A stretch of DNA of 17,869 nucleotides, from positions 1-17,869 of IMG/VR virus record IMGVR_UViG_3300005977_000075. One strand, given 5' to 3'. The translations under genes and the position numbers were made by a program. Shown piece by piece: positions 615-17,035 of the stretch (position 1 is its first letter; each line of letters opens with the position of its first letter). Under the pieces are notes generated by a model that saw only the letters and a list, made by a program, of their open reading frames with translations, did no database searches and was not told where the DNA came from.

Positions 615-995
615 TGCACATCTCCCATACTTATAGCTAAATAGCTGAAAAGTTTATAAAGCCGGGAAAAATTGTGCGGGCTGGTCTGGAGCTGGAGAAG
701 ATTTTCTCCCAAACAGCTGTTTAGGTGAGGTTGTGTGTGTCCACCCCGCCCCCCACAGCCACCAAGCCTGCAGAGAAAAAATTCAACGGCTACAGCTGAA
801 TTAACAAAATATCGCGTTTGAATTGTCCAAACATATGGTTGAGGCAAATTCTGAACCCGTCATGACCTAGTTAGGACAAATAGAACAGTTATGAACGTGT
901 GTGAACTAACGTACTATTACTAGATATAGATAAACAAAAATATTTTTAATAAAGAGAAGCCGACGGGGGGTGAGGCATGCCACCCACCCGCTTTG

Positions 996-1898
996 CTACA
1001 ACATTATCTTGAAACTATGTAGGCGTAGTAAAGGACTAAATAGCAAACTATGTAATAGTGGGTGTCTTAGCCTTCTGACATATCTTGTCCCGTGGTTTTG
1101 GTTTTCATACTCAACAACAAAGTGGTTAAAACCTACGTTATGCTCTGTGTCGGACTTATACAACTGGATTGCCTCGTCCCTACGATTGTCCCTTAGAAGC
1201 AGTAATATTACAGCGATCTTAATTACGCCGAAATTGTAGAGTTTTGCGAACTTATCAATTTTACTAATATATCCATATCTTTCAAGAAGATCGAAGGCAT
1301 ATTGCTGTATAAGCTGTCTACGCATTTGTATTTCTGCTTTAGATACATCAAGCTCATTATTGAGAATATAATTCAAGTTGGCTAACGCATCAGATAGTTT
1401 TTGCCTTGCAGTTGTCTCTTCTTCTTCTATGAAGTTAGGTATAAGCTGTATTACGTCATTAAAATCAACAGAGCAGTATCGAATTGCGAATGCACCAAGT
1501 ATATAGAATTTATGTCTAAGTTTCCTATGAAAGATTTTTTGTACTATCCCCATGAAGACAGCTTTTTGTACTGAATTATTAATTAATGCAGATAGTCTGT
1601 GTGCAAAGACGTAGTATTTTAGCCTCCTGTTGTCGAACTTTGAAGGGATTGTACCAATCCCATAGTTAGGTAAAAGAGTGTAATGGCGTTCGTAATGAGA
1701 ATAGATCTTCTTATTGTCTTTAGATAATTTATGAATCCCTTCTGTATTGCTAAAAAACCTCTCATCATCATATTGTATAACTTCTCCAGTTTCGGCACAC
1801 ACGACGTATATGCCGTGTGTGACAAACTCCTTGCACTCTACAGTTTGGTCTGGAGTTTGGTTGAGAACGGTTTGGTTGAGAACAATTGATTCTGTCAT
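996..1898 (-). CDS. Diverged transcription factor B (TFB/TFIIB)-like protein
   Basis: 300 aa, close to TFB length. N-terminal VVCAETGEVI resembles the atypical Sulfolobales TFB1 ribbon (YICSETGEVL, from memory). LLPNYGIGT resembles the reader/linker (IHDRGLST), ILNNELDVS the inter-repeat segment (LLRELDVS), and LLLLRDNRR the second cyclin repeat (LLHDERR). These occur in the same order as in TFB. Confidence 0.65.
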   Translation of the reverse strand: MTESIVLNQTVLNQTPDQTVECKEFVTHGIYVVCAETGEVIQYDDERFFSNTEGIHKLSKDNKKIYSHYERHYTLLPNYGIGTIPSKFDNRRLKYYVFAHRLSALINNSVQKAVFMGIVQKIFHRKLRHKFYILGAFAIRYCSVDFNDVIQLIPNFIEEEETTARQKLSDALANLNYILNNELDVSKAEIQMRRQLIQQYAFDLLERYGYISKIDKFAKLYNFGVIKIAVILLLLRDNRRDEAIQLYKSDTEHNVGFNHFVVEYENQNHGTRYVRRLRHPLLHSLLFSPLLRLHSFKIML

Positions 1899-1913
1899 AC
1901 TGTTTCATATTGA

Positions 1914-2448
1914 CAAACAGCTGTTTAAATATATTTAGCATCATGAAACACGTGAGTATCCTAGACCGGCTCCTAACATGAGGGTTTTGAGAAAGAGTTG
2001 AGGGCGACTTAATGTACTCTGTTCGAAAAACGATTTTACCTTTGGGTTAAAAGTGGATAACGAGATATGGATAGTAGTAATCTGCGTATACGTTTTTGGA
2101 TAGTATAACATCGCCGACGTGATGATTAGGTATTGTGACCACGATCCTGTTCCAGTCCCTGAACTCTTCGAAAGCTATCTCGTTATTGCGTTGAACTATC
2201 GCTATCGTCGGCAGAGAGTGGAGGTCGGCGTGTCGTATATTACCCTTAATAAATATCTTGTTTCCTTCGACCTCATAATCGATATTATACTTCTTCAAAA
2301 GATCGATTACCTCTTGTTGCATTTTTTTGCTCTGGTTATTTTCGTCCCAGAATTCTTGTGCCATTTTTATCCGTTTAATATTCTCAAACAGCTGTTTAAA
2401 TATATTTAGGATCGTGAAACGCATATATCACGTAGTATCCCCCCGGCT
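1914..2448 (-). promoter_or_regulatory. Duplicated promoter block (1914-1968 and 2385-2448) upstream of the TFB-like gene and the 105-aa gene
   Basis: On +, both read CAAACAGCTGTTTAAATATATTTAG-N-ATC-N-TGAAAC...CACGT(G)AGTATCC...CCGGCT. Confidence 0.85.
2047..2364 (-). CDS. Hypothetical protein, 105 aa (start revised to ATG 2364, MAQEFWDE...)
   Basis: The longer ORF start (2424) runs through the promoter. The ATG at 2364 lies about 30 nt downstream of TTTAAA, in a promoter duplicated with that of the TFB-like gene. Confidence 0.75.
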   Translation of the reverse strand: MAQEFWDENNQSKKMQQEVIDLLKKYNIDYEVEGNKIFIKGNIRHADLHSLPTIAIVQRNNEIAFEEFRDWNRIVVTIPNHHVGDVILSKNVYADYYYPYLVIHF

Positions 2449-2465
2449 TACTGAGAACTGGAACA

Positions 2466-2500
2466 GAAAAGAGAAGAGAAGATGAAGAGAAGAGAAGATG
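2466..2500 (-). terminator. Pyrimidine-rich putative terminator; 16-bp tandem duplication (AAGAGAAGAGAAGATG x2 on +, 2469-2500)
   Basis: Lies immediately after the stop of 2514-3548 and reads as a U/C-rich tract on the transcript, as Sulfolobales terminators do. Confidence 0.45.
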
Positions 2501-2513
2501 TATACTTCCTAGC

Positions 2514-3548
2514 CTAGTAGGACATCATGAAGTTTCTGAGTATAAATTCGTAAATGTTGTAGGACTTGAGTTTTTGATCCAAGACGGAACGGAAGTCATC
2601 GTCGATCTTGTAGTTAATTCGTGCGTTAAGCAGTGACATAGTGACGTTGAGCATCAGATCGAACAGTACGTTTCTCCAAAATCTATCCTCAATCCTGTAT
2701 TCTTGGGACAGGACTTCGGCGATGTTACTCAGTCTCGATCTGCTCAATTGTCTCTCGGCGTCTAAACCCTTGACGTAACTCTGAAGGGCTCTAAACGTTT
2801 TTGTCAAGTCACTCACTGTTGATGATTTAAATCCCCGTGTTCCCGGTTCGAGGAAAAGTTGTCTCGTTACGTCAATCATGCCGGTATATCCTATCTTGTT
2901 CCCTGTCATGGAAATGTTGAAGGACATTATCAGGGGGAAATATAACGTGTAAAAGTGATGATTCCCTTTTTTCTTACTTTGCGGGTTTAACAGGTTCTCG
3001 AGCTCTTTCATCATACGTTGGTATGTGGACGTCATTTTGGTCTCCAACACTTCCTTCAAAGACTTAACTGGAGCGTTTACGGTGTCAGCGGTGGTCTTGG
3101 AAAGCATCAACATCTTGTACACGTGCGACAATGTGTCTGTGGAGACCGTTAAGTCTTCCCCCAACGGGACTCTTGTAGTGAGGTCTGACCCTATGGTGAC
3201 ACTCTGTAGGAATTTAATTAGTCCCAGTTCAGTCAGTAGAGAGGCTATGTAGTACTGGTTCAGATCCCCGGTGTCTATCTTAAGTTCGTCCTTGAGCTCC
3301 TCTGCCCTCCTAAACACTCTATCTAACTTGTCCTTGAGCCCGTTAACGTGCCCAATCTTGCCGTAGTCCACAGGGAGAAGGAACCCCTCCCTTAACCACC
3401 GGGCAAAGGTAGCAGATTCATCCCTGGAGATCTTGTTGCTTGACCTTGACTCTATAAGGGGGAGTACATCGTTAACCACGTAATTTATGAGTAACCTGTC
3501 TGGGTCTGTTGTTGGTGATTTGAACGTTTGAATATTCATGATCATCAA
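2514..3548 (-). CDS. Hypothetical protein, about 344 aa, unknown function
   Basis: Long ORF with natural composition. Upstream AT-rich TATA-like tract plus both palindromic motifs; downstream pyrimidine-rich tract on the coding strand. No family recognised. Confidence 0.85.
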   Translation of the reverse strand: MMIMNIQTFKSPTTDPDRLLINYVVNDVLPLIESRSSNKISRDESATFARWLREGFLLPVDYGKIGHVNGLKDKLDRVFRRAEELKDELKIDTGDLNQYYIASLLTELGLIKFLQSVTIGSDLTTRVPLGEDLTVSTDTLSHVYKMLMLSKTTADTVNAPVKSLKEVLETKMTSTYQRMMKELENLLNPQSKKKGNHHFYTLYFPLIMSFNISMTGNKIGYTGMIDVTRQLFLEPGTRGFKSSTVSDLTKTFRALQSYVKGLDAERQLSRSRLSNIAEVLSQEYRIEDRFWRNVLFDLMLNVTMSLLNARINYKIDDDFRSVLDQKLKSYNIYEFILRNFMMSY

Positions 3549-3769
3549 TCTATGTGTTGCCTGGCTGATATTTTAACTTAACACATATGTTTTATGATCT
3601 GCCTAACAAGTTAGGGAAGTTTAGGGTGAAACTGAGGTGGGTGAAGAAAGTGGGGGGTGAGGGGTGAAGTGAAGAAGAGAGGGGCGAAGAAAGAACAAAT
3701 GTAAGAATACATATGTTTTACGATAAAGTAAAGGCAAGAATGGGACGAATAATATAAAAACTAGAAAGT

Positions 3770-3842
3770 GGTAGAATATGGGGAGAAAGATGGGGAGAAA
3801 GCGGGTAGAATATGGGGAGAAAGATGGGGAGAAAGCGGGTAG
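3770..3842 (+). repeat. 34-bp direct repeat x2 (GGTAGAATATGGGGAGAAAGATGGGGAGAAAGCG) containing ATGGGGAGAAAG x4
   Basis: Read directly: 3770-3803 is identical to 3804-3837, followed by a partial GGTAG. Confidence 0.95.
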
Positions 3843-3877
3843 TAGTAGAGGTGCATGGGGTAGAGGGGGAGGGGGAG

Positions 3878-3901
3878 GAGGTGTTTAACGAGGTGTTTAA
3901 C
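3878..3901 (+). repeat. 12-bp tandem duplication GAGGTGTTTAAC x2 (duplicated RBS of the wHTH gene)
   Basis: Read directly; it contains the archaeal SD-like GAGGTG just before the ATG at 3903. Confidence 0.9.
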
Positions 3902-3902
3902 T

Positions 3903-4454
3903 ATGAATAAATCAACACCTAATAATAAACTTTTCGGTGAACCTCCTTTTAGGTCTAAAAAAATAGAAAAAATATTTGAGGAGTTATCAAAGGGAGGAAA
4001 GCTAGCACGAGAGCTTGCGGAATTGATCAATGTGCCTTCCAAGCAAATCTATCCCAGGGTCAAGAGGTATATCGAAAAAGGCTGGATCTGTGTGAAAAAG
4101 ATAAACAACATTAACATTTATTACTTGTCAGAAACTGCTAAGAAAATATTCGAGTTACAGAGTAGTAGTTTTGAGAAGGTTAAGGAGAAGGCAGAACATT
4201 TAATGGGAAGAAAATTGGACGAAGATGAATTAGAAATTCTAAAGTTCTTCTATGAACTAAATGGCAGTTATGTAGAAAGGAATGAAAACGAATCCATAGC
4301 AGAACAGGTTTACTACGCACTGAAACTGAAGAGGATAATACTCTCTAGGGTAACTGAAATACTCACTGAATTTACTAAAGCTAAGGTACTTTTTGCATAT
4401 AGGTTAAGAAATGGTGTAATTCTGAAGGTAAGACTGAATAAGAATCTTCTCTAA
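3903..4454 (+). CDS. Winged helix-turn-helix DNA-binding protein (possibly two wHTH domains)
   Basis: N-terminal KIFEELSKGGKLARELAELINVPSKQIYPRVKRYIEKGWICVKKINNINIYYLSE is a typical ArsR/TrmB-like wHTH. The C-half (ESIAEQVYYALKL...VTEILTEFTKAKVLFAYR) suggests a second wHTH. Confidence 0.85.
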   Translation: MNKSTPNNKLFGEPPFRSKKIEKIFEELSKGGKLARELAELINVPSKQIYPRVKRYIEKGWICVKKINNINIYYLSETAKKIFELQSSSFEKVKEKAEHLMGRKLDEDELEILKFFYELNGSYVERNENESIAEQVYYALKLKRIILSRVTEILTEFTKAKVLFAYRLRNGVILKVRLNKNLL

Positions 4455-4830
4455 ATCGAGAATAAGAAACACCTAATTCTATCTTTCATGTTTCTCATTC
4501 TTGTAATAAATATTCAAACTAACGTAACCACCAGTTTAATTTGTAAAAAGTTCTTGAAAGTTAAACTAATTCTTTGAATTAGTTCTCCAGTTTGCTTCTA
4601 AAAATCCTAGATTCTCTAAAAAGAGACTTACTATTTATTACTACTACTCGACTTTTCACAACAAATAAAGATGTCAATAGACGTTCTTTTACTGGTGTCA
4701 ATTTTACGTATTTTTATGAAGACTAACTTACACTTTCTGAGACTAATTGAATTATTACTTTTACTTTTAGGAAAATTTTTGCGAAAAAAAGATGCCAAAA
4801 GAAAGGAGGCTTCTTTACTTACCTGCACAC
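4455..4830. other. AT-rich non-coding region with inverted repeats (candidate origin/unwinding element)
   Basis: 13-bp IR 4459-4471/4489-4501 (1 mismatch) and a perfect 9-bp IR AACTAATTC-TTT-GAATTAGTT at 4564-4584. No convincing ORF. Confidence 0.4.
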
Positions 4831-4964
4831 TTACCGTGTTCCGCTTACTTTTCTCTGCTCTTCTTCTCTGCTCTTCAGTAGTAGTTATTACCAGCAGTTG
4901 AATTTTTCTCGGCAGGCTGGGGCTTAAACAAATCCCCCTCAAACAGCTGTTTAACGCTTTGTTC

Positions 4965-5055
4965 TAGCATACCCCGCTCGTCGTGGTGGCGTCATTCCTG
5001 CCTAACTTGCTAGGCAGAAGATTTAAATACCAGTCCCCACAAGAGTATAGTTGTG
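4965..5055 (+). promoter_or_regulatory. Duplicated promoter: CCTAAC-NN-GCTAGG palindrome, BRE (AGAAGA), TATA TTTAAATA
   Basis: Closely similar copy at 5851-5929; the same architecture occurs on the minus strand at about 13973-14007. Confidence 0.8.
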
Positions 5056-5511: not shown

Positions 5512-5531
5512 TTCATATAAGGGGTGGTTCA

Positions 5532-5681
5532 ATGGTTAACTGCTTAGAATACCTGAGCAATAACAAGTACAATCTCAGTGGGTACAGCCCCGATACATTC
5601 TATTTTCTTTTTAACACAGACACAGAAGGAGAAGAAGAATGCGAAGCGTTATTCCTGTATCTTGAAGCCAGGTACGGGTAA
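5532..5681 (+). CDS. Small acidic hypothetical protein, 49 aa (MVNCLEYLSNNKYNLSGYSPDTFYFLFNTDTEGEEECEALFLYLEARYG)
   Basis: Manual translation. Strong SD GGGGTGG at 5521-5527, 20 nt after the previous stop, followed by T-tracts. Confidence 0.65.
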   Translation: MVNCLEYLSNNKYNLSGYSPDTFYFLFNTDTEGEEECEALFLYLEARYG

Positions 5682-5850
5682 AAGTCAGCCCATTTTTTAT
5701 GTTTTTCACCATAAAACAGCTGTTTTAGGTTAGGGTTGGCTGGTGGGTTCATCCACCCCCTCCACCCCAGTTTGTCCCTACACTCACTTTCATTTTGCAC
5801 TTTCATTTTGCAAGACTTTTGAAGTGAGAACTTCTTCACTCATCCGTGTT

Positions 5851-5929: not shown

Positions 5930-5936
5930 GAGTAAG

Positions 5937-6065
5937 ATGTTATCATTAGATAGAATGAAATTGTGGTACTATTACGCTAATAAAGAAGTGAAGTTTACCG
6001 ATATAGAGAAAAAGCTATTATCTGAACTAGGTATTAAATACCAGTCCCACGGTGGTTATGCTTAA
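5937..6065 (+). CDS. Small hypothetical protein, 42 aa (MLSLDRMKLWYYYANKEVKFTDIEKKLLSELGIKYQSHGGYA)
   Basis: First ATG after the duplicated promoter, with GGAG upstream. Its TAA overlaps the next ATG (TAATG). Confidence 0.6.
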   Translation: MLSLDRMKLWYYYANKEVKFTDIEKKLLSELGIKYQSHGGYA

Positions 6066-6600: not shown

Positions 6601-6665
6601 AGCTAAGTATAAATATGAATTTTGAAAAACGATTCGTTTTACCAAGTTCATGGTAAATCGTTTAG

Positions 6666-6785
6666 TAAATAGTTTAATATTGTTTCGCAAATATCGTTGT
6701 CTATATCTTTTACGTCAGTGAGAGATCCTCTAAATAGTTTAATATCGTTTCGCAAATATCATTGTCTATATATTTTTCGTCAGTG
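6666..6785 (-). repeat. 55-bp imperfect direct repeat (6666-6720 and 6731-6785, 4 mismatches) duplicating the 3' end of ORF 6710-7081
   Basis: Read directly; period 65 bp. Confidence 0.92.
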
Positions 6786-7081
6786 GCAGACCCCCAATGT
6801 CCTCGTAATTTGCACACTCCTCTACTATATACTAAATCTATGTTAGGGCCTCCAAAAGTTATACCAATGTCGAAGCCTACTAGTTCTCTACTTGGTAAAG
6901 AGGTGTAAAGTATTATGTCGATGGCGTCGTCTATAACCTCTTGTAACTTGTCCTGCTGGAATTTGTCCTTAAGTTCCTTTGCTATAAAGTCCAAATTTTT
7001 TTCTAATGCTGTACGGTTATCTGCAGAATTTATCAAAATATCTAACATGTCCTCTTTATTTTGACCAAATTCCTGCGACAT
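6710..7081 (-). CDS. Acidic hypothetical protein, 123 aa, with a FGGPNI...GHWG motif
   Basis: Leaderless-type gene: CTTAAATA TATA about 22 nt upstream, preceded by AAACAGCTGTTT. Function unknown. Confidence 0.8.
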   Translation of the reverse strand: MSQEFGQNKEDMLDILINSADNRTALEKNLDFIAKELKDKFQQDKLQEVIDDAIDIILYTSLPSRELVGFDIGITFGGPNIDLVYSRGVCKLRGHWGSATDEKYIDNDICETILNYLEDLSLT

Positions 7082-7155
7082 AAGAAAATGTTTTCACAGC
7101 AGTATTTAAGCATTTCGTAAACAGCTGTTTGAGGTGGTATTTCCTTGGCGAACCC

Positions 7156-7332
7156 CTACTGCTTCTCCCGTTTGTCGATGAGGACTTTTCCGTGGATTTT
7201 TAACACTCCGGTTCTGTCATACTCTGCTAACGCATCAAGGTATTCTCTATAGGTCTCGATAATATAATCTACCCTGTTATGCATTCTCTCCAGGATCTTT
7301 TTCTGCTCGTCGGTTAATTTATGCGTTACCAT
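7156..7332 (-). CDS. Small protein, 58 aa (MVTHKLTDEQKKILERMHNRVDYIIETYREYLDALAEYDRTGVLKIHGKVLIDKREKQ); possible stand-alone Phd/Doc-type antitoxin mimic
   Basis: Manual translation (below the ORF-track cut-off), with its own TATA-like TTATAAATA upstream. The amphipathic helix IIETYREYLDALAE resembles Doc-neutralising helices. Function is inferred. Confidence 0.6.
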   Translation of the reverse strand: MVTHKLTDEQKKILERMHNRVDYIIETYREYLDALAEYDRTGVLKIHGKVLIDKREKQ

Positions 7333-7377: not shown

Positions 7378-7929
7378 TTACATTTCGCTCCACATCCCGG
7401 TTGCCATAAGGACGTATATTACGCTCATCACTTCTCCGAACGATGCTATGAAATCGATAATTAACGAGAGGTCATGGACAAACAGCTGTATTGGCGGAGC
7501 GATGAACGGCAACGATATGTTGGACGTCATAGGTAGCAGTATAGCGGTGAAAAACACTAAAATGCTTTCAAAACTATTGAAAATGAATTGAAGTAGTAAA
7601 TAAATGAAGATTATTTGCATAGTACTCATATTTTGCTGTGACAAGTTCAGGAGATAATTCCTTGTAAATAGTGCAGAAATAGTAGCTAGTCCTGCTATTG
7701 CTCCTCCTGCTATTATGCCGGCACCTTGAAAAACACTCCCTAGAACATGTTCTAGGAACAATACTAGGTTGAACGACAACAATAACGATATGTAATTTCC
7801 AAGTGCGGGGTCTGTTGAATACTCATTGAAATTAATCAAGGTTACCAGCAGATCGACGAGAAAAGTCGAATATATTATACCTTCGTTGATCCTGTAAAAG
7901 ACAGTTGCGAGTGAACCTATCAGTCCCAT
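7378..7929 (-). CDS. Multi-pass membrane protein, 183 aa
   Basis: Several long hydrophobic segments. Leaderless-type gene with TTTTTAAT about 22 nt upstream, overlapped by AAACATATGTTT. Confidence 0.85.
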   Translation of the reverse strand: MGLIGSLATVFYRINEGIIYSTFLVDLLVTLINFNEYSTDPALGNYISLLLSFNLVLFLEHVLGSVFQGAGIIAGGAIAGLATISALFTRNYLLNLSQQNMSTMQIIFIYLLLQFIFNSFESILVFFTAILLPMTSNISLPFIAPPIQLFVHDLSLIIDFIASFGEVMSVIYVLMATGMWSEM

Positions 7930-8000
7930 GAGATGATTTTAGTTCTTAGATTAAAAAAACATATGTTTTAGCTCTAAGGTTCTTCTCAGCACCTTCTCTT

Positions 8001-8755: not shown

Positions 8756-9274
8756 ATGAAGCGAGGGTACAGGAAAAAAATCAAGAGGGTAAAGACACAC
8801 AACCACGCCATACACATATATGCATTTCCATGGGAGTGTTACAAAGTCAGGGAAATAAGCGATGATGTTTATGAATTGTTCCAAGCAGATTGCAACGACC
8901 CAGAAGCTAAAAGAAAAGCGGAGACTTCAGTGACAATAAACGTGAAAAAGAGGGGTATATACAACATTTTGTTATTTCCAGAGAAGATAGTTTTCAAATT
9001 AGCGAAAGAAGAACATAGATACACTGTAACTAATTTACTATTTTTCCCCAGAAAAGTATACGATCTGCAATTCGATGACGAGAACCTTATTTTAAAATAT
9101 GTATATCCTTCTGGGAAAAAAGTAGGCACTGTGAAAATCAAGTTAATGAAACCCGTTGTATTTGAGAGAGATAAAAAAGACCACTACAGTATAATGAAGT
9201 TCGGGAAACCTGACGATTACCAGATTTTGAAAAAAGAAATTCTGGAAAAGGTGGAAGTTGTCGCTAGTAAATGA
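8756..9274 (+). CDS. Basic hypothetical protein, 172 aa
   Basis: TTTAAAG TATA about 22 nt upstream (leaderless); overlaps the ATPase gene, suggesting an operon. Confidence 0.8.
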   Translation: MKRGYRKKIKRVKTHNHAIHIYAFPWECYKVREISDDVYELFQADCNDPEAKRKAETSVTINVKKRGIYNILLFPEKIVFKLAKEEHRYTVTNLLFFPRKVYDLQFDDENLILKYVYPSGKKVGTVKIKLMKPVVFERDKKDHYSIMKFGKPDDYQILKKEILEKVEVVASK

Positions 9275-10181
9275 TTATATAAAATTAAATGATACCGACC
9301 CAGAAAAGGCACTCTTGAGAGTAGATTACAATACACTGTTACCTATGTTCGAAAAATACTACACACAGGTGTATGATGCTAATGTGAAGTTCATCGATTT
9401 CCCCTACATGGAGAAACAGTACATTGAATTATCTAGAAAATATTACATGGAAGGTATTGCCGATTTAACGGTTCTCATGATGCATACAATATACCAGATC
9501 ACGATAGACAGAAAGGAACACAAGTTCGAAAAAATAAGACCTGTCCCGATTGACACCGGTCAGACGACGATCGTTAGCGGGGAGTCCAGGGGAGGGAAAT
9601 CCTCATTGGCGTTGTGGCTTGCGTACGCGTTATATGGCGATTGGGACGTCGCTATCGCACACATTATCATCGATCCGTTGCAACTCGACGACCTAATTGA
9701 GGGAATGAAAACATACGGGATAAACAAGATCCCGATGATAATTATTGATGATGCCGGTATAGGTTTCGGAAAACAGGTAGGGAAGATGGACAGACTTAGA
9801 CTAGAAAAGATACATAAATATGCACAGACATGGGCAATAAAGTTCAGTAACGTGTTGATGACTATACCGTCGGAAACTAGGCTTTCTGGTGTATTGATGA
9901 AAGCCATGCCATCGTCGTATGCTATTACAATAAAACCATTGACAATGATGACGTCTGAGGCTCACGTATACAAGAACGTTGTCAACATCACAGGAAAGTT
10001 ACTGAAGACTAAACATACACTTAGGGATTACAACAGTGTTAACGTTGGGCTTATCTTAAAGAACGAGCTAAAAAACAAGTATTCGCATATAGTGTATACA
10101 CCAAGGCTAATGCCAGACGAAGCTTACGTGAAATATAAGCAACTCAGAGAAGACTATCTATACATTATCGCGAAGATGTGA
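9258..10181 (+). CDS. P-loop ATPase (possible viral packaging/morphogenesis ATPase)
   Basis: Walker A TIVSGESRGGKS and Walker B MIIIDDAG; GGTGGA SD before the TTG start. The specific role is inferred. Confidence 0.88.
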   Translation: MSLVNDYIKLNDTDPEKALLRVDYNTLLPMFEKYYTQVYDANVKFIDFPYMEKQYIELSRKYYMEGIADLTVLMMHTIYQITIDRKEHKFEKIRPVPIDTGQTTIVSGESRGGKSSLALWLAYALYGDWDVAIAHIIIDPLQLDDLIEGMKTYGINKIPMIIIDDAGIGFGKQVGKMDRLRLEKIHKYAQTWAIKFSNVLMTIPSETRLSGVLMKAMPSSYAITIKPLTMMTSEAHVYKNVVNITGKLLKTKHTLRDYNSVNVGLILKNELKNKYSHIVYTPRLMPDEAYVKYKQLREDYLYIIAKM

Positions 10182-11147
10182 ACCTTTTTTTACAGAGGGG
10201 ATTGAGGAGGAACTCAACCTACTTATTATTTCTCTTCTTCTCAGCGGGAACTCTGTAGCAATTGCAGTTAGGATGCCGTAAACTATTCCAGTTACCCCAA
10301 AAAGTTCCTGGAAGAGCAAAGTCCACAGATAAACCCCGTAACTCACCTCGCCTAAGAAGACCGTTACACGACTAAGTACCCTGGGTGGCTCCACGATAAG
10401 GAGGGCGAAAGCGGGTAACGCCAAATTGTAAATCAAGAACCTTGTGAAGAACTCATATACAAATTCATTAGAGGAAAATACAAATGTAATAAGAACATAT
10501 TGAGCGTAAAGTATTAGTATGAAATATTTGGCTTTTTTGGCTGGTTCACCTTTCTGTTTCTTCTTCAAAAGGTAAGCAATTATTCCCCACCCGTATGCCC
10601 CTAACCACAAGGGTGGCATGAAGTAAAGTAAGTGGAACTCGTCGTAAGGAAGGAAGACGATAAAGAGACTGTAGAAGAACGATATAAATACCAATAAAAC
10701 AGCTGTTTGAAACTTTGCTTTATCGCTCACTCCATGAATGACGGGGATAGCTAAGTACATCCATTCCTCCAGCTGGAGAGACCAGAAGAGATATTGAAAG
10801 GAAAACGGTGCAAAAACGAAGGAAACAAACGCAAAATGGAGTATCAAGTCGTAATACGTCACGCCCATATGGAACACGTATCTGTCGGCTAAGAATACAG
10901 TGACTACGGCAAGGAAGTAGAGTGGCCATATCCTCCTCACCCTTCTCGTGAAGTAACGAGCTAGTGAGGGGTTTTCGTCGAGTCTGTTCAGAAGGAGAAA
11001 AATCGATAGCTCGAAAAATAGGGGAACACCCAACCAACCAGGACGGAAAAATGTGAGAGGGACTAGTTGAAGAGTCCACAGATGATATAAAGCTACAGAA
11101 AAAGCAGAGAAAAAACGTAGCTGGGCTATTCTAGGGTCATACTCCAT
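10158..11147 (-). CDS. Acyltransferase family 3 (OafA/YrhL-like membrane O-acyltransferase)
   Basis: RIAQLRFFSAFSVALYH, GWLGVPLFFELS, YFTRRVRRIWPLY, FWSLQLEEWMY and FLGEVSYGVYLW match the AT3 motif series; about 10 TM segments. Confidence 0.92.
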   Translation of the reverse strand: MEYDPRIAQLRFFSAFSVALYHLWTLQLVPLTFFRPGWLGVPLFFELSIFLLLNRLDENPSLARYFTRRVRRIWPLYFLAVVTVFLADRYVFHMGVTYYDLILHFAFVSFVFAPFSFQYLFWSLQLEEWMYLAIPVIHGVSDKAKFQTAVLLVFISFFYSLFIVFLPYDEFHLLYFMPPLWLGAYGWGIIAYLLKKKQKGEPAKKAKYFILILYAQYVLITFVFSSNEFVYEFFTRFLIYNLALPAFALLIVEPPRVLSRVTVFLGEVSYGVYLWTLLFQELFGVTGIVYGILTAIATEFPLRRREIISRLSSSSIPSVKKGSHLRDNV

Positions 11148-11878
11148 TTTAGTCGCCTGGCATATATCATGCCGATCTTCTTGTTTCCTTTAATTGTAAC
11201 GTTAAACCCTGATGCTCTAAGCAGATCTGCAAGATGTTGAACGCCGTTATGATATTCTATGATAATTGTGTGATATCTACTAATCAAACGTGGTGGAACA
11301 GCACCAAAGAAATCGTATTCACACCCTTCACAATCGACTTTAAGTACAGACTCATAAGGAATATTATATTTCAGCGTTATAATATCTAAATTATTCGAAA
11401 GTCCACACTCACAACGAATCGGCTCAACGACGTCTTTTACATTGTTTTCCCTTATGTTCTTCTCTAAGTACCACACATTAACGTCAAACGCATAGACTTT
11501 CTTTGCACCGTTCAAGACAAAATAAATTGGCGAATCGCCTATCCCCGCACCGACATCAACTACTGTCCTTCCTTTTACATCAACATCATATGCACCGTCT
11601 CTGAAAATTTCCCCGAGAGCCACGAAACTATTTGTATCGAAATAGAACTTTAGTATCCTGTCCCTGTATCTAACTTGTATAAATCTATCATCAACATAAA
11701 TTACGTCAAGATCGCGTAACGTTGTAAAGAAATAAGCGTGCCATTTCGACTTTATTTCTACTTCCAACCCGTTCCTTAAGTTAGCTGTGAAAGGGAACTT
11801 GTTTAATGCTGTCTTAAACATGACATTTAACGGATTATGATATGCGGACATATACGCCTTAAACGTTTTGAAATCCAT
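11126..11878 (-). CDS. FkbM-family SAM-dependent methyltransferase
   Basis: VVDVGAGIGDS (motif I), KVYAFD, LKVDCEGCEY, IIIEYH. Confidence 0.92.
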   Translation of the reverse strand: MDFKTFKAYMSAYHNPLNVMFKTALNKFPFTANLRNGLEVEIKSKWHAYFFTTLRDLDVIYVDDRFIQVRYRDRILKFYFDTNSFVALGEIFRDGAYDVDVKGRTVVDVGAGIGDSPIYFVLNGAKKVYAFDVNVWYLEKNIRENNVKDVVEPIRCECGLSNNLDIITLKYNIPYESVLKVDCEGCEYDFFGAVPPRLISRYHTIIIEYHNGVQHLADLLRASGFNVTIKGNKKIGMIYARRLKWSMTLE

Positions 11879-11945
11879 GGTCTTTATCTTGTGCGTGTTG
11901 TAATTAAAAATGTGAAAAACAACTGTTTAATATCTTCATTCATTA

Positions 11946-13946
11946 TCACCATGTCCCAGTGACAGGGAAAGAGTCGGACTTCAACATTTTCTCCCTTATT
12001 ATTGTCATTTTCACCCTTATTTCGGTCAGTGATTCTATAATGTCATTTGCTAATTCGTCCTCAGTTTTTTGCATTAATTCTTCATAGTTAAAGCTACGGC
12101 AGTACCCAATGCCGTCTGGCAGGGTATATTGTGGACATTCATATTCTTCATAATCCTCATCACCTTCGCGATGAGACAAGTTATTTTTATTCTGTAGTAA
12201 CTTGTTGTACAGTACTACAGCTTTCTGGAATAATTCTGACACTGCCCCCCTCACATCGTCACCAATCGAACTATAATCTCTCTCGTACTCCACAATTGCT
12301 TCATCGTAACCCCTAATGAAGTACAACATGTTCTTTACCACACTTATATCATCATCATCTGAATAACGCCCAGATAACCCAGCATACTCTAAGAAAATCG
12401 GTACAGGCATATGACCCTCATTTGTACTGATTAAGGAATGGTATGATGATAACCTTTGCTGTTTATCCAGTTCTAATGCCACATTACAATGCTTATCGAA
12501 TATACAGTTAATCTCAGCAATATCCTTAATCGGCGATGTAAAATCTGGGACTTTGTCCCTCACATAACCAATCGTCTTATCGATAACTTTGATGGTAGTA
12601 TCAACAAACTTCTCAACGTATTGTTTGACCTGATTGAACGGCATTGGATAGAAGTACCTTTCCTCAATTTGCCTGTTAATTATATCTGCAACTTTCTCTT
12701 TACTGAGGTTTTTGAGTCCATTAAAGTCCCTCACGTCAAAATACCACAAATAAGTCCTTAGAGATGTTAAGAGCTTATTTTCTTCATAAACACCGATGTG
12801 AATTTCGTCTTCGTGTCCTTTTATTACTATATATTTGTAGCCTTTTATTACTATATATTTGTAGCCGTTGTCTATTTCAAAGCTATCAGCACTTTGTGTG
12901 ACATTAACTCCTAATAATAATTGCAAATATTTTTGGACGTTTTTGGACGGAACTATATGGTAGTAATCTCCACCACAACTATCAAATATATAATAATCTC
13001 TAGGCTCGTAAAACAGGAGACTTTCTTTCTTTGGATTTATATCATGTATTGTCTGCATTGGGTCAATATTTAGTATATTTAGTATTCTAGCGACTTTTAG
13101 CAGATAGTCATAATGCACTTTAATGAACCAAAAGTCGTTTTTGTGGAGCTCAATACTGACAGGGACATTAAGCCTTGACATTTTCTCAATTATAGGAAGT
13201 ATATCAGCTCCCCAGTTCTCATCCTTTAGTTCTAGTACTATATTATTCAGGGATACTTCGGTACCATCAGTTGTTATTTTGTTAAACCTTTCAATTACCG
13301 GCATTAACTTATCAATTACCGGCATTAACTTATTCAATATCTTCTTCAGGTTTTCCTTCCCTTTGCCTTCTAACCCTAGCTCCTCACCATAAGCTTTTAT
13401 GGCAAATTCGGGTTTTGATAAAGACAATTTATCTAAGACGTCTCTGACGTCCTGGTCTATGAAATCTCTAATTTTTTTGTATATTTCCCAATTCTTTATA
13501 CTTAAAATGATGAATTTCTTTGTTTCTTTGTCGTATAAAAGAGAAATTTTGCCTATGATATCTATTAAAATCATGTCGTTTTTAATAGTAGAAAGGGCTA
13601 TCTCATCATTATCAGTAGTTAAGTTAAGGTTAATTAGTTCCTCTGGCAACGGTTCTAGCTTAAAGACACAGAAAAAACCTAGTTCTGAAAACTTTAGTTT
13701 ATCAATGTTTATATTAAATAGTTGAGATAAATTTGACAAAACCTGGTCAGCCTTTGAAAAATAGGGTGTCCTGATGTATACGTCGCCACTAGAGTCTACA
13801 ATGAGAGTAAACTCTTTACCCCGAGAGAAACAACTGTAGTAGTAACCGTTAAGACCACATACTTCGTTATTATATTCTTCACGACACTCTACTCCTATAC
13901 TTTCTATACTTTCTATAATTTTTTTTACTCTTTCTACCATTTCCAT
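11946..13946 (-). CDS. Large hypothetical protein, 666 aa, with two in-frame tandem duplications
   Basis: Long ORF with GYKYIVIK x2 (12817-12864) and KLMPVI(D/E) x2 (13291-13332). Its promoter has the same type as that of 5053. No family recognised. Confidence 0.88.
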   Translation of the reverse strand: MEMVERVKKIIESIESIGVECREEYNNEVCGLNGYYYSCFSRGKEFTLIVDSSGDVYIRTPYFSKADQVLSNLSQLFNINIDKLKFSELGFFCVFKLEPLPEELINLNLTTDNDEIALSTIKNDMILIDIIGKISLLYDKETKKFIILSIKNWEIYKKIRDFIDQDVRDVLDKLSLSKPEFAIKAYGEELGLEGKGKENLKKILNKLMPVIDKLMPVIERFNKITTDGTEVSLNNIVLELKDENWGADILPIIEKMSRLNVPVSIELHKNDFWFIKVHYDYLLKVARILNILNIDPMQTIHDINPKKESLLFYEPRDYYIFDSCGGDYYHIVPSKNVQKYLQLLLGVNVTQSADSFEIDNGYKYIVIKGYKYIVIKGHEDEIHIGVYEENKLLTSLRTYLWYFDVRDFNGLKNLSKEKVADIINRQIEERYFYPMPFNQVKQYVEKFVDTTIKVIDKTIGYVRDKVPDFTSPIKDIAEINCIFDKHCNVALELDKQQRLSSYHSLISTNEGHMPVPIFLEYAGLSGRYSDDDDISVVKNMLYFIRGYDEAIVEYERDYSSIGDDVRGAVSELFQKAVVLYNKLLQNKNNLSHREGDEDYEEYECPQYTLPDGIGYCRSFNYEELMQKTEDELANDIIESLTEIRVKMTIIREKMLKSDSFPVTGTW

Positions 13947-14058
13947 TCCTGGTCAAACATATGTATGCCAAAACTGGTATTTAAACCTTTTTGCCTAACC
14001 AGTTAGACAAAAAGTAGGGTGATGGAAAAACAGCTGTTGGAGCTATTTTCTCTTTCGT

Positions 14059-14101
14059 CCCACCTCAAGGAGGGAGACGTCTGCCCCCTCAACCCCTGCC
14101 C
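14059..14101 (-). mobile_element. Degenerate IS200/IS605-like left-end remnant abutting the TATA box of the RHH gene
   Basis: CCCACCTCAAGGAGGGAGACGTCTGCCCCCTCAACCCC aligns with CCCACCTCACGGAGGAGGACTTACGCCCCCTTAACCCC in the 14457-14557 element; followed by TATTTAAA. Confidence 0.55.
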
Positions 14102-14132
14102 TATTTAAAAATAATCTGGCAAGAACATAATC

Positions 14133-14450
14133 ATGGGAAAAAGAATCGTCTCGTTTAGAATAGAACGTAGTGCACTTGAATTGATTGATTCTAAGAACAA
14201 GAATAGATCTTCAGTGATGAGAGACGCTATAAACTACATTATCCGGGAAGGTATAACAAAGGACGATATACTAATAGCCCTATCCATCCCGATAGACGAG
14301 AAGAGGCAAACAAGTGTTAAAATCGATGAAGAGACGTTAGACAGGCTAAAACTAATTGCGGAAGAGAACCATATACAAGTAAGTGAACTCATGAGAATCG
14401 CAATATGGAAACTCCTCCTGAAAGACGGAGCAGTTAGTGTGCCCCAGTGA
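14133..14450 (+). CDS. Tandem ribbon-helix-helix (CopG-like) transcription regulator
   Basis: Two RHH units: RIVSFRIERSALELID...NRSSVMRDAINY and RQTSVKIDEETLDRLKLIAEENHIQVSELMRIAIWKLL. Leaderless, TATA at 14102-14109. Confidence 0.88.
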   Translation: MGKRIVSFRIERSALELIDSKNKNRSSVMRDAINYIIREGITKDDILIALSIPIDEKRQTSVKIDEETLDRLKLIAEENHIQVSELMRIAIWKLLLKDGAVSVPQ

Positions 14451-14456
14451 ACTTTT

Positions 14457-14557
14457 GTGAACTACCCCGCCCTAATGGGGCTTCCTGCTTCAAAGGTGGC
14501 TATCCATCCCCCACCTCACGGAGGAGGACTTACGCCCCCTTAACCCCCCAGAAACTA
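14457..14557 (-). mobile_element. Miniature non-autonomous IS200/IS605-like element (left end plus right end, about 100 bp, no ORF)
   Basis: On the minus strand: TTTAA, then GGGGTTAAGGGGGCGTAAG...GGGGATGGATAGCC (left-end-like), then GAAGCAGGAAGCCCCATTAGGGCGGGGTAGTTCAC (right-end hairpin ending TCAC). Near-identical copy at 17036-17146. Confidence 0.7.
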
Positions 14558-14595
14558 TTTAAACACTGCTCAAACATATGTTTAAGTGACACCAG

Positions 14596-14814
14596 TTGAA
14601 CCCGTTTGCAGTATTCTTTATCGCAGTTTTTGTCCTAATACCGTTTTTATTGCTTATCGTAGTTTTGGCAAACAACTTTACCGGATTATTTTATAGCATA
14701 GATGGGAGTTCATTTACACCAGTGGCAAATACTGTAAACTACATGTTGTGGGCATTCGTAGTTTTGGCAATAGCTTTGGTTGCAGTCCTGATAATATACA
14801 AGAAATATACGTGA
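14596..14814 (+). CDS. Small two-helix membrane protein, 72 aa; possible minor capsid protein
   Basis: Two hydrophobic helices, an N-F-T sequon in the linker and a basic C-terminus (IIYKKYT), as in spindle-virus capsid proteins. Confidence 0.65.
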   Translation: MNPFAVFFIAVFVLIPFLLLIVVLANNFTGLFYSIDGSSFTPVANTVNYMLWAFVVLAIALVAVLIIYKKYT

Positions 14815-14849
14815 ACTGACCGTCCTAAGGGAACCCTCGCCCTTTACGG
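14811..14849 (+). mobile_element. Truncated tnpB 3'-end/right-end-like fragment
   Basis: GTGAAC...CGTCCTAAGGGAACCCTCGCCCTTT resembles the Sulfolobales orfB/tnpB terminus (coding RPKGTLAL, from memory); the second hairpin arm is missing. Confidence 0.45.
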
Positions 14850-14922
14850 TAGACCCAAAATCACCTCCTTGAAATTAAAAGAGGAAAATAATTAATAAAT
14901 AATTCTAGATTTTAAAAAAAGT

Positions 14923-15564
14923 TTAACTTTTATTTGTTAAAGCTTCTAAATCAGGCAACGTATGTTCTATATCGTATAATACGCTGTCTATCTCATCTAG
15001 TAAAATGCTTAATACCTCTAATTTATTACTGTCGTCCAGTTCATCATAAAAGCCCTCCCAATAACCTATTTCCTCATAATAGCCATAATTTTTCACTCCG
15101 AAGACGGTATCGCCTATCTTTTTGTACCAATAATCCAAATCATCACCACTTAATGGCTTCTTGTTTTGTAATGCACGCTTGATTGCATCAGCGAATTTAA
15201 CTAATACCTCGTCGTAAGCTTGTAGACGTCTAGCTTTACTGGCGTCATCAAGCTCATCGTTTTGCACTATATTTTGATATAACATCTGTAATTCATCGCC
15301 GAGAGAACCACCGGCTTTTAGGCTCATCGTTTCCTTCCACAAACTCTCATATTCCTTTTTCACCTCGTCCCAGAAGTTGTCTGAATTTTCAATCGCTTTG
15401 TCGAGATCTTCAGCTTCATTCTCATCAAGGTATGCATCTACAAAAACGTCCAATTGGTCTGGGTTGTGGTCTGTCAAGCACCCGAGTGGTGTGTCGCCAC
15501 TAATATTTTCACAATAATTGGCTACTCTGTCCATCACGAGTTGAGCTACATCACGTGGTTCCAT
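14923..15564 (-). CDS. Highly acidic hypothetical protein, 213 aa
   Basis: About 50 D/E versus about 20 K/R by hand count. Own promoter (AAACAGCTGTTT-GAGAAAG-CTTATATT) and T-rich downstream tract. Confidence 0.88.
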   Translation of the reverse strand: MEPRDVAQLVMDRVANYCENISGDTPLGCLTDHNPDQLDVFVDAYLDENEAEDLDKAIENSDNFWDEVKKEYESLWKETMSLKAGGSLGDELQMLYQNIVQNDELDDASKARRLQAYDEVLVKFADAIKRALQNKKPLSGDDLDYWYKKIGDTVFGVKNYGYYEEIGYWEGFYDELDDSNKLEVLSILLDEIDSVLYDIEHTLPDLEALTNKS

Positions 15565-15638
15565 TTTTATTCCCGATACAAAATTCCTGAGTCGGGAATA
15601 TAAGGCTTTCTCAAACAGCTGTTTTATTTATTTAGGTA

Positions 15639-15733
15639 CGGACTTCCTCCCCTCACTGGTAGGGCGAGGGAAGGCTAAGCATTTCCTATGCTTCTCCGGA
15701 GGGTGAGGTTTTCCATCCCCCTTAACCCCCAAC
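15639..15733 (-). mobile_element. Miniature IS200/IS605-like element of a second subtype (degenerate)
   Basis: Minus strand: TTTATAAA, then GGGGGTTAAGGGGGATGGAAAACC (left-end-like), then CCCTCGCCCTACCAGTGAGGGGAGGAAGTCCG (right-end-like; compare GGGGAGGAAGTCAG). Confidence 0.5.
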
Positions 15734-15813
15734 TTTATAAACTTTCCGTTTCAAATCAATCGAAGTGCGGGGTTTTTAAGTATTTCCTGTGTACTCTAAT
15801 ATTAGGACTGGTC

Positions 15814-16278
15814 ATGACAATTGAGGACAGAATTTATCGTTTAATTAAACTTTTGCTTTACACTGCAAAAGAGGAGAATGCAAAAGTCACTCCGACCAAA
15901 CTGCAGAAGATTTTCTTTTTACTTGAGAAAGAGAAGGGAATTAATCTAGGACTGGATTTTGAGCCTTGGTTCTTCGGTGCTTACTCGTCGAAATTACAAG
16001 ATTACGTCCATAAACTAATCGCAATAGGAGACGTCGACGTTGTAAAGGAGAAAAAAGTAAGAGATCCATTGAGCGGAGCAATAATAGGGTACGTAAGGAA
16101 TCATGTTTTAAACAGCGAATTTAAGCCTGAGGAACAAGACAAGGAGATTGAGGCATTTTTCAGGGAATGGGTCAAGAAGAGCAAAGACGAGATCATGAAC
16201 TACGCGTATCGGAAATACCCTGAATACTTTGAATATTCTAAGATTAGAGATCACATTTTTAGCAAGTTGAAAAGGTAA
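15814..16278 (+). CDS. SocA/Panacea (DUF4065)-like antitoxin, 154 aa (start revised to ATG 15814)
   Basis: VTPTKLQKIFFLLE...FEPWFFGAYS and YAYRKYPE match the KLQKLLY...F-x-W-x-x-GP pattern. The longer start at 15688 lies inside the mini-element. TTTTTAAG TATA at about 15773. Confidence 0.75.
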   Translation: MTIEDRIYRLIKLLLYTAKEENAKVTPTKLQKIFFLLEKEKGINLGLDFEPWFFGAYSSKLQDYVHKLIAIGDVDVVKEKKVRDPLSGAIIGYVRNHVLNSEFKPEEQDKEIEAFFREWVKKSKDEIMNYAYRKYPEYFEYSKIRDHIFSKLKR

Positions 16279-16311
16279 ACTACCCCGCCCTCACGGACGG
16301 GGTCTCAGGTG
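16275..16311 (-). mobile_element. IS200/IS605-like right-end hairpin overlapping the stop codon of the SocA-like gene
   Basis: Minus strand: CACCTGAGACCCCGTCCGTGAGGGCGGGGTAGTTTAC, with hairpin CCCCGTCC/GGGCGGGG; the same end as the 14457 and 17036 copies. Confidence 0.65.
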
Positions 16312-16513
16312 TCAAAAGATGAAGTCGACTTTTGTTAACTTTCTCTTTTTCCGTTTTACGTTATTTCTGCCTAACTGGTTGGGCTGAAACTGTCCCTATT
16401 CACTTCTCTCTTGTTTTTCTCCCATTTTTCTCCCAGTTGTTTTTCTCCCAGACCAGGAATAGTGAAGCGAAAAGCTTATTAATACCTCAAACAGATGTTT
16501 TACACGAAGCAAA

Positions 16514-16984
16514 ATGTCAGTTTCGGTAATCGTTCCGTCCGCAAAAGCAACAGGAGCAGGTGGTAAGAAAGCAAAAATGTTCAAGGTAATTAACGTTCAT
16601 ACACCAAATGCAAATAGTGTTCATATACCAAAAATAAAGAAAGCGACTAGAATTCATGATCCAGGAGTAGCAGGGTCGTTAGTCAGAGTAACGTTTGGAA
16701 CCAACGGGTTTGACATTCCAACAATAGCAATAGCCCTCTTGATAGTCGGTGTAATAATAGGACTATCAGGTTTAATTCTCTCTATCTTCGCCACAGCTAC
16801 TGCCTCAGCAATAAGCAATCCGTCACCAGGAACATTAGCGTATAACTTGACGCACCCGCTGGTAAACGGTATGGTATCGTTCTTCAGCTTCTTCCCAACG
16901 CTATACGTATTGCTCGGTGTGACCGGAATAGTACTCATCGCGGCAGGTATAATATCCATAATAATGGAGAAATTCAAGACTTAA
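16514..16984 (+). CDS. Probable major capsid protein of a spindle-shaped virus (basic N-terminal region plus two long hydrophobic helices)
   Basis: Basic N-terminus of about 65 aa, helix 1 DIPTIAIALLIVGVIIGLSGLILSIF, linker with an N-L-T sequon, helix 2 FFPTLYVLLGVTGIVLIAAGIISII, then a basic tail. This is the architecture of fusellovirus VP1 and bicaudavirus capsid proteins. Strong BRE-TATA (GAAAAG-CTTATTAA) and T-rich terminator. Confidence 0.75.
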   Translation: MSVSVIVPSAKATGAGGKKAKMFKVINVHTPNANSVHIPKIKKATRIHDPGVAGSLVRVTFGTNGFDIPTIAIALLIVGVIIGLSGLILSIFATATASAISNPSPGTLAYNLTHPLVNGMVSFFSFFPTLYVLLGVTGIVLIAAGIISIIMEKFKT

Positions 16985-17035
16985 AACTCGAAGTCAAACA
17001 TGTGTTTTTTTCCGCGAATTCACTTTCTTCTTCTT

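Follow-up and report, generated by a model that had tools for sequence, protein, structure and literature searches.

A promoter-linked palindrome as a candidate family-wide operator in a monocaudavirus-like contig and other bicaudaviruses

The window analysed here is a whole 17,869-bp Joint Genome Institute (JGI) metagenome contig from Yellowstone (sample 3300005977; IMG/VR record IMGVR_UViG_3300005977_000075), whose kin are the Sulfolobus monocaudaviruses (SMVs) SMV1, SMV3, and SMV4, with 83–88% identity across one fifth of its length. The element in question is a palindrome, AAACANNTGTTT (AAACA-NN-TGTTT), which recurs throughout the contig and lies mostly outside its genes. Pfam searches on about 30 open reading frames (ORFs) of the window recognised four domains: a ribbon-helix-helix domain (RHH_1, E = 9e-8) at 14133–14450 on the plus strand, a weak TrmB-like winged helix at 3903–4454, an acyltransferase at 10158–11147(−), and a methyltransferase at 11126–11878(−). 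Gene support was taken from metagenome gene calls together with our own ORF map.

A pattern search returned 13 perfect sites, starting at 711, 1915, 2386, 4941, 5714, 7119, 7957, 10697, 11917, 14572, 15613, 16489, and 16996, the same count and coordinates as an earlier inspection of the letters by eye of a model (hereafter the sequence-only reading). Dinucleotide-preserving shuffles contained 0.06 perfect sites on average and one at most, and 0 of 200 reached 13, in agreement with the previous estimate of fewer than 0.1 copies by chance. The six one-mismatch copies claimed before became seven on recounting (829, 3581, 3707, 7480, 13955, 14028, and 14308), which brings the sites with at most one mismatch to 20 against about 1.6 expected. 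The centre dinucleotide of the perfect sites is GC in eight, TA in two, and AC, GA, and TG in one each. The palindrome exceeds 12 bp, many copies reading CTC-AAACA-NN-TGTTT-GAG. In a logo of 102 sites from the window, SMV1, SMV3, and SMV4, the 9-bp half-site consists of C (54%), T (73%), C (50%), AAACA, and then G or T; since the half-site ends in G or T, the centre is GC, TA, or hybrid GA/TC. In SMV-lineage genomes the complete palindrome reads CTCAAACA(G/T)(C/A)TGTTTGAG, two 9-bp half-sites with ACAGCTGT as the core. These half-sites (CTCAAACAK) stand head to head with their centres about 9 bp apart, an arrangement that is compatible with an RHH protein and not specific to one.

Along the left half of the window, the first perfect site, AAACAGCTGTTT at 711–722, is preceded by CCC (short of the usual CTC flank by one C), lies where the only ORFs are doubtful, and has no ortholog in SMV1–4. 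At 1915–1926, the order is TATA, site, start: a minus-strand TATA box (AAATATATTT) abuts the site, and 16 nt farther on comes the ATG of gene 996–1898(−); this site is conserved in SMV3 and SMV4 and differs by one change in SMV1. The site at 2386–2397 duplicates the 1915 promoter and serves gene 2047–2364(−). The promoter/leader segments 1915–1950 and 2386–2421 of these neighbouring minus-strand genes are near-identical (site + AAATATATTTAG + S + ATC + R + TGAAAC), which indicates a local duplication. A one-mismatch site at 3581–3592 lies upstream of gene 2514–3548(−). The CTC-flanked site at 4941–4952, conserved in SMV1 and SMV4, sits at the edge of ORF 4631–4942(−), which is doubtful, as are the ORFs in or beside which site 711 falls. 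The site at 5714–5725, conserved in SMV3 and SMV4, is found 14 nt downstream of a TATA-like ATTTTTTATG and comes after a conserved 49-aa gene (5532–5681). At 7119–7130, the site is 7 nt upstream of the TATA box of gene 6710–7081(−), abutting the TFB-recognition element (BRE), and also 25 nt beyond the stop codon of a Phd-like gene. The TA-centred site at 7957–7968 overlaps the TATA box of gene 7378–7929(−) and is identical in SMV1, SMV3, and SMV4.

In the right half, the site at 10697–10708 lies within the acyltransferase gene in a Thr-Ala-Val frame and is conserved at SMV1 position 47058. The AC-centred site at 11917–11928 precedes the TATA box of the methyltransferase gene by 7 nt. A one-mismatch site at 13955–13966 is positioned between TATA and the ATG of gene 11946–13946(−), and another, at 14028–14039, about 65 nt upstream of the TATA box of the RHH gene. 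At 14572–14583, a TA-centred, CTC-flanked site identical in SMV1, SMV3, and SMV4 follows its TATA box by 7 nt and precedes the TTG start of 14596–14814(+) by 12 nt. The site at 15613–15624 separates the divergent genes 14923–15564(−) and 15688/15814–16278(+), with a TATA box adjoining on either side. The GA-centred site at 16489–16500, identical in SMV1–4, stands 6 nt after BRE/TATA and 13 nt before the ATG of 16514–16984(+), the ortholog of SMV1 gp03. The last site (16996–17007, TG centre) begins 11 nt after the stop codon of that gene and lies upstream of the SMV1 gp04 ortholog; its arms are mostly kept among orthologs, with one arm change in SMV3.

The link to promoters is strong. Twelve of the 13 window sites are not fully within a supported gene, as had been claimed, and at an intergenic fraction of 0.24 the binomial probability is p = 4e-7. 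Sites outside genes number 16 of 28 in SMV1 (intergenic fraction 0.12, p = 1e-8), 16 of 44 in ATV, the two-tailed virus of Acidianus (0.08, p = 1e-7), and 22 of 28 in the first 50 kb of SMV4, which is about 13% intergenic. Among the intergenic sites of the window, SMV1, and SMV4, each oriented by its nearest gene, 22 of 42 end 9–17 nt 5′ of a start codon. Two geometries recur. In class I, BRE/TATA, 0–14 nt, the site, 9–17 nt, and the start succeed one another; in the window this class comprises genes 996–1898(−), 2047–2364(−), 14596–14814, and 16514–16984, and, with one mismatch, 11946–13946(−). A Sulfolobus TATA box is usually centred near −27; because this usual TATA-to-start spacing was assumed, the class I site is placed at roughly −17 to −6. 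In class II, the site is 7–8 nt upstream of TATA and abuts BRE, as in 6710–7081(−), 11126–11878(−), and the divergent pair at 15613. Variants of class II either overlap TATA (7957) or lie about 27–30 nt upstream of it (SMV1 gp04 and gp38). The class geometries recur in the window, SMV1, and SMV4, and the three placements described by the sequence-only reading (overlapping TATA, upstream of it, and between it and the start) were all seen. That reading had also listed the capsid gene as a target; the window contains no homologue of the major capsid (head) protein, whereas both head-protein genes of SMV1 and SMV4 are class I, with the site between TATA and ATG. The palindrome is a genuine, promoter-associated cis-element: about 11–13 of roughly 20 window transcription units carry a site, in distinct classes of position relative to TATA. 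Units counted as lacking it include three whose promoters bear a different element (described below).

The element extends well beyond the window. SMV1 has 28 perfect 12-mers against 0.15 expected, SMV4 has 30 (28 of them in its first 50 kb), and SMV3 has 31 (23 in its first 50 kb). SMV2 has 3 perfect copies and 18 with at most one mismatch against 2.5 expected, and degenerate copies are also seen there where orthologous promoters lie. ATV has no perfect 12-mer. The core ACAGCTGT ranks first among all 256 palindromic 8-mers in the window plus six bicaudaviruses, namely SMV1–4, ATV, and the Acidianus tailed spindle virus (ATSV). Observed and expected core counts are 10 and 0.24 in the window, 22 and 0.8 in SMV1, 33 and 1.1 in the first 50 kb of SMV4, 20 and 1.0 in the first 50 kb of SMV3 (26 in its whole genome), 44 and about 0.9 in ATV, 9 and about 0.7 in ATSV, and 6 and 0.9 in SMV2. 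Flanks are lineage-specific, reading A-R-A-ACAGCTGT-T-Y-T in ATV and TCACAGCTGTGA in ATSV. The 2-bp spacer is strict: AACA-N2-TGTT occurs in 37–43 copies per SMV genome, and spacers of 0, 1, 3, or 4 bp in 0–3 copies. An exact 18-mer scan of IMG/VR found 48 stretches, mostly from hot-spring samples, with 3–9 copies of the 12-mer each. The motif is absent from STSV2 (spindle-shaped virus 2 of Sulfolobus tengchongensis) and SIRV2 (rod-shaped virus 2 of S. islandicus), which share the same hosts, and zero copies were found in 135 kb of chromosomal DNA from three genera (S. solfataricus, A. hospitalis, S. acidocaldarius, and related metagenome-assembled genomes), sampled as stretches around Phd-like genes. 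A scan of the genome collection with the 18-mer hit at least 120 loci; the matches listed are single copies at chance level, non-Sulfolobales and nearly all bacterial, and the lack of Sulfolobales among those listed is indicative only.

All window sites but 711, 10697, and 11917 (10 of 13) are orthologous in at least two of SMV1, SMV3, and SMV4. Over 13 pairwise alignments, the arms are identical at 128 of 130 positions (98.5%), and the 37-nt flanks on each side at 82–83% (Fisher p = 4e-8). The centre varies between orthologs: TG/TA/CG at 16996, AC/GC at 11917 (GC in SMV1), and GC/GA at 15613. Kept arms around a free centre are the pattern that would be expected of a protein contacting the arms. 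The element is conserved, under strong selection, and fixed in position relative to promoters.

Sites inside genes are also in excess. They amount to 28 of 44 in ATV and 10–12 of 28 in SMV1, more than 30-fold over chance, and they are read as Gln-Leu (CAG CTG) or Thr-Ala-Val and never as Ser-Cys (split 18/10/0 in ATV). The sole two SMV1 sites in a Ser-Cys frame lie in the N-terminal extension of gp11 and the C-terminal extension of gp43, which are missing in relatives. Both segments, SMV1 16772–16893 (the start of gp11, the second head protein) and about 44000–44096 (the gp43 C-terminus), are over-extended in appearance, and judging from these comparisons they are probably annotation errors. 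The gp11 site forms a typical class I TATA-site-ATG promoter and matches that of SMV4 gp14. In the large structural gene, internal sites are conserved among SMV1, SMV3, and SMV4. Distances between sites have a coefficient of variation of 0.61–0.77 against 0.97 for random placement, with even-spacing p values of 0.0008 (SMV4), 0.009 (ATV), 0.02 (SMV3), and 0.06 (SMV1). Gene spacing may account for part of this evenness, but the internal sites of long genes suggest that lengthy intervals without a site are selected against.

These observations give good support to the reading as a master cis-regulatory site. On balance, and with a modest degree of confidence, we favour an operator: the palindrome would be bound by a single sequence-specific protein governing most transcription units of the virus and its whole lineage. 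Two copies of the reader would occupy the two half-sites, head to head and about one helical turn apart. Where the site falls between TATA and the point of initiation, at about −17 to −6, the TATA-binding protein (TBP) and transcription factor B (TFB) could still bind and RNA polymerase would be blocked, resulting in repression; at a site abutting BRE or about 30 nt upstream of TATA, recruitment of TFB/TBP would be helped or hindered. A single factor might in this way serve as a programme switch, turning one promoter set off and another on, and its binding may spread or bridge along the genome, as hinted by the extra selected sites within long genes. Unpublished SMV1 transcriptomes cited in a 2023 paper place gp01, gp05, and gp36 early and gp04 and gp38 in the middle/late phase (PMC10681719). 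In SMV1, gp01 and gp36 carry no site, gp05 is class I, and at gp04 and gp38 the site precedes TATA by about 27 nt, a pattern that fits a factor shutting off class I and turning on upstream-site promoters, although five genes prove nothing. The position-dependent output proposed by the sequence-only reading is consistent with this timing to the same extent.

The reader is most likely virus-encoded. A dimeric or two-fold sequence-specific protein, as had been proposed, is a natural partner for such a site; the winged helix-turn-helix (wHTH) protein at 3903–4454, named earlier as one possible controller, was rejected, as its sole homologue in a sequenced virus is in the motif-poor SMV2, and SMV1, SMV3, and SMV4 lack it and keep the motif at full density. 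Directly before the ATG of the wHTH gene, a direct repeat, GAGGTGTTTAAC twice (about 3878–3902), follows a G-rich, purine-rich stretch. The DnaA/Cdc6-like protein (9258–10181) was set aside as well, being also present in the motif-free STSV2, and Pfam searches on about 45 viral ORFs added no DNA-binding candidates beyond a SWIM zinc finger (SMV1 gp17), a B116-like protein (ATV gp06), and the RHH/zinc-finger ORF189. The best in-window candidate, tentatively inferred and less likely than not to be the reader, is the 105-aa tandem RHH protein of 14133–14450(+). It is a genuine single-chain double RHH: its two RHH repeats align, and the AlphaFold2 (AF2) model (pLDDT 86.8, pTM 0.79) orders strand-helix-helix, an extra helix, and strand-helix-helix. 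Its best matches in the PDB are chains E, F, and G of F-plasmid relaxosome cryo-EM structures (TM score 0.71, root-mean-square deviation 2.2 Å). We take these chains to be TraY, itself a double RHH in a single chain; single-chain Arc comes lower in the ranking (E = 1.5). The protein is identical on 13 contigs from several samples and shares 85% identity with its counterpart in SMV1, 73% in SMV3, 77% in SMV4, and 59% in SMV2. A search for related loci with this single protein returned close relatives only; distant homologues are ATSV gp35, ATV ORF189 (tandem RHH plus C2H2 finger), and two STSV2 proteins. The second β-strand reads TSVK in the SMVs and ATV and differs in ATSV and STSV2, which is suggestive only. 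Upstream of the RHH gene, the position of the window's one-mismatch site is occupied in SMV4 by a perfect one, and SMV1 and SMV3 have none because mobile elements inserted there.

Several points weigh against the operator reading or against the tandem RHH as its reader. A plain promoter operator needs none of the many intragenic sites, nor does it require spacing evener than random. Transcription start points were derived from TATA spacing, and the support from timing comprises five genes from unpublished data cited in a paper. Structural genes with repression geometry would be predicted to be early, which is odd. STSV2 has relatives of the tandem RHH without the motif, ATV and ATSV have only distant versions of it, and the promoter of the RHH gene itself has at best a distal, imperfect site. 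Finally, a host factor is conceivable beyond the 135 kb of host DNA sampled.

In a rival explanation, the palindromes would be evenly distributed places at which a protein is loaded to coat, bridge, condense, partition, or package viral DNA, promoter effects being secondary; a spreading repressor/silencer is one possibility for this protein, a centromere-like binder another. The excess of more than 30-fold in tolerated frames only, the several conserved internal sites per long gene, and the regularity in ATV, SMV3, and SMV4 (p = 0.0008–0.02) all point that way. Spreading from a primary site has been proposed for the viral regulators AvtR and SvtR, and archaeal-virus RHH regulators are reported to spread about 100 bp (PMC5569661). 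However, intergenic sites keep fixed distances to TATA and start codon, which a pure structural mark would not need; no ParB-family protein was recognised in the window by Pfam, BLAST gave no SMV1 counterpart of the ParB-like ATV gp70, and the sites are dispersed, with no cluster beside a partition operon. We regard this explanation as rather unlikely, and similarly a bolder version, in which palindromes spaced evenly at about one per 1.3–1.8 kb, the interior of long genes included, would nucleate a small cooperative protein, e.g., the tandem RHH, that spreads over or bridges viral DNA and sets a silent, carrier, or productive state genome-wide, an arrangement conserved since ATV, ATSV, and the SMVs split. 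The genome-organisation alternative raised by the sequence-only reading is in this form kept alive by the shared core, the intragenic sites, and the even spacing, three points that reading had missed, and a broader organising role is possible; a classical parS is unlikely. An RNA-level hairpin or terminator, or a restriction/methylation site (CAGCTG), is very improbable. Sites 16996, 7119, and 11917 do lie just beyond stop codons, and the window does encode a methyltransferase, but folding at 37 °C predicts only weak hairpins (0 to −5.6 kcal/mol) that do not surpass those of shuffled sequence (z −1.7 to +0.6), with no regular T-run after the site, where the commonest next bases are G, T, or A and AG comes after them; on this folding the hairpin/terminator was rejected. 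The free centre (GC, TA, GA, TC, and others) shows that CAGCTG is not required, for which reason the restriction/methylation site was rejected, and viruses usually avoid restriction sites rather than accumulate them.

Two further alternatives leave the operator function in place and change its reader. One, which we hold to be a slim prospect, assigns it to the small winged-helix family of SMV1 gp43 and ATV ORF98a, which is not encoded in the window. The distribution of this family matches that of the motif (SMV1–4, ATV, and weakly ATSV; absent from STSV2 and SIRV2), its SMV1 and ATV members are 56% identical over 77 aligned residues, far above most shared proteins, its AF2 model is a canonical winged helix nearest to CRP/FNR DNA-binding domains, and a site lies just 3′ of its gene in every genome checked. 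Against it, close homologues, at 65–80% identity, are found on conjugative plasmids of Sulfolobus and in host genomes; of these plasmids, pHVE14 has a gp43-type gene and no ACAGCTGT, and pKEF9 has only 3 copies. Furthermore, the putative recognition helix shows no marked polar or basic character, and about 650 nt of non-coding sequence invariably precede the gene, suggesting an origin-associated role. This arrangement is seen at SMV1 43038–44096, pKEF9 15590–16516, and pHVE14 19625–20567, and also in SMV3 and SMV4; the stretch and the winged-helix gene may be a shared replication-origin module. Slightly less probable still is a host (Sulfolobaceae) transcription factor recruited by the viruses. 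It would account for an 8-bp core kept in ATV and the SMVs, whose proteins are mostly 25–35% identical, and no clearly orthologous, likewise conserved small DNA-binding protein was found except the one wHTH family; the half-sites AACA/TGTT are moreover those of the host Ara-box AACATGTT (PMC7264815). It is opposed by the zero copies in host DNA of three genera, by the absence from SIRV2 and STSV2 in the same hosts, by the lack of enrichment of the spacerless Ara-box form in these viruses, and by flanks that differ with viral lineage, as co-evolving viral readers would produce (the hosts differ too).

The palindrome would function much as the operators of a phage or viral regulator do, and its nearest parallels lie with the RHH regulators of archaeal viruses. 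Analogous to the situation here, AvtR of the Acidianus filamentous virus 6 (AFV6), SvtR of SIRV1, and F55 of the Sulfolobus spindle-shaped virus 1 (SSV1) are small virus-encoded regulators that read short repeats located within promoters or close to them. AvtR, at about 100 aa, shares the single-chain tandem RHH form of the window's 105-aa protein and represses or activates by context, although the PDB search detected no sequence similarity between the two. Their consensus sites (AvtR ATnnTnnTAnnACnTT, SvtR ATnnTTCAAnAnnnnnAAAATG, and F55 ATAGATAGAGT) are unrelated to the palindrome, and their regulons contain about 2–8 sites, whereas the palindrome has 28–44 per genome, selected intragenic copies included. 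The aCcr1-box involves an RHH regulator from the same virus family (ATV gp29, SMV3 gp63) and likewise lies between TATA and start, causing repression. However, that box, A(T/G)G(A)TA(G)A(T/G)TACN, is 9 bp long, has a 58-aa RHH reader, is located in host promoters (cdvA), and is unlike the palindrome; with a different sequence and no aCcr1-type RHH in the window, identity was rejected. Sites of parS/ParB, Noc, and SlmA are palindromes of 12–18 bp present in tens of copies per replicon, intragenic ones included. The likeness lies in the dispersed palindromes; the present one is instead locked to promoter geometry, has no ParB-like partner in the window or the SMVs, and its 28–44 sites are dispersed, with none clustered at an origin or par locus. 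The Ara-box/XylR regulon of the Sulfolobales shares identical, palindromic half-sites, and in activated promoters the box lies upstream of BRE/TATA (PMC7264815). The Ara-box has no spacer, in contrast to the strict 2 bp of the palindrome, and identity was rejected on the counts (0–2 copies per genome with spacer 0 against 37–43 with spacer 2).

A second promoter element occurs in the same viruses. Early (anti-defence) gene promoters of archaeal viruses share, as with the palindrome, a conserved regulatory sequence common to many promoters of one genome, and in SMV2 inverted repeats overlapping BRE have been put forward as the place where a repressor binds (Bhoobalan-Chitty et al. 2024, PMC11065993). 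The SMV2 element joins TTCTGCCT...AGGCAGAA to TTTAAATA(T/C)C and differs from the palindrome in sequence, which rules out identity. The window has its own promoters of this class at 5023, 6034, and 13974 (stretches about 4985–5035, 6034–6045, and 13974–14010), where the inverted repeat TTCTGCCTA...TAGGCAGAA is joined to TTTAAATACCAG; this is the element found in the SMV2 anti-defence-gene promoters gp37/39/41/51/52. Both the one-mismatch palindrome at 13955 and the early-type inverted repeat lie in the promoter of the 666-aa gene. Since the second element is separate and the promoter of the Phd-like gene at 7156–7332(−) has no AAACA-NN-TGTTT, the palindrome is not the published early-gene signal. 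The 58-aa product of this gene is homologous to SMV1 gp44, a Phd-like antitoxin mimic that has been shown to neutralise the host Doc/Fic toxin (PMC11065993); its DNA is near-identical in rudiviruses SIRV7–10, and host homologues adjoin Fic genes. Elsewhere in the window, the 49-aa ORF at 5532–5681(+) is conserved as ATV gp05, ATSV gp04, SMV3 gp70, and SMV4 gp62, with invariant motifs GYS.DT and EARYG. Positions 1–990 contain no supported gene, one perfect and one one-mismatch palindrome, and no SMV1–4 counterpart; ORFs 286–585(+) and 596–847(−) in this region have TTG starts and no family match.

No prior description of the palindrome was found in the searchable literature, where AAACAGCTGTTT, ACAGCTGT, and CAGCTG combined with archaea or Sulfolobus matched primers and unrelated work only; a mention in the original ATV and SMV1 genome papers is possible. 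What is unusual is the scale (28–44 sites per genome), the family-wide conservation with lineage-specific flanks, and the selected, evenly spaced intragenic copies. Almost nothing is known of gene timing and of carrier or lysogenic control in the large spindle-shaped archaeal viruses (ATV, ATSV, and the SMVs), and for ATV a 2017 review only named candidate regulators, none of them tested. An element of 12–18 bp that marks over half of the promoters across six genomes or more, as well as in numerous relatives known only from uncultivated samples, offers an experimental handle: it is usable as a bait for the regulator, as a predictor of promoter class, and as an annotator of gene starts, in which capacity it has already flagged two likely mis-annotations in SMV1. 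It could also serve switchable promoters for Sulfolobus genetics. The selected intragenic sites and their even spacing may represent a layer of control beyond ordinary operators.

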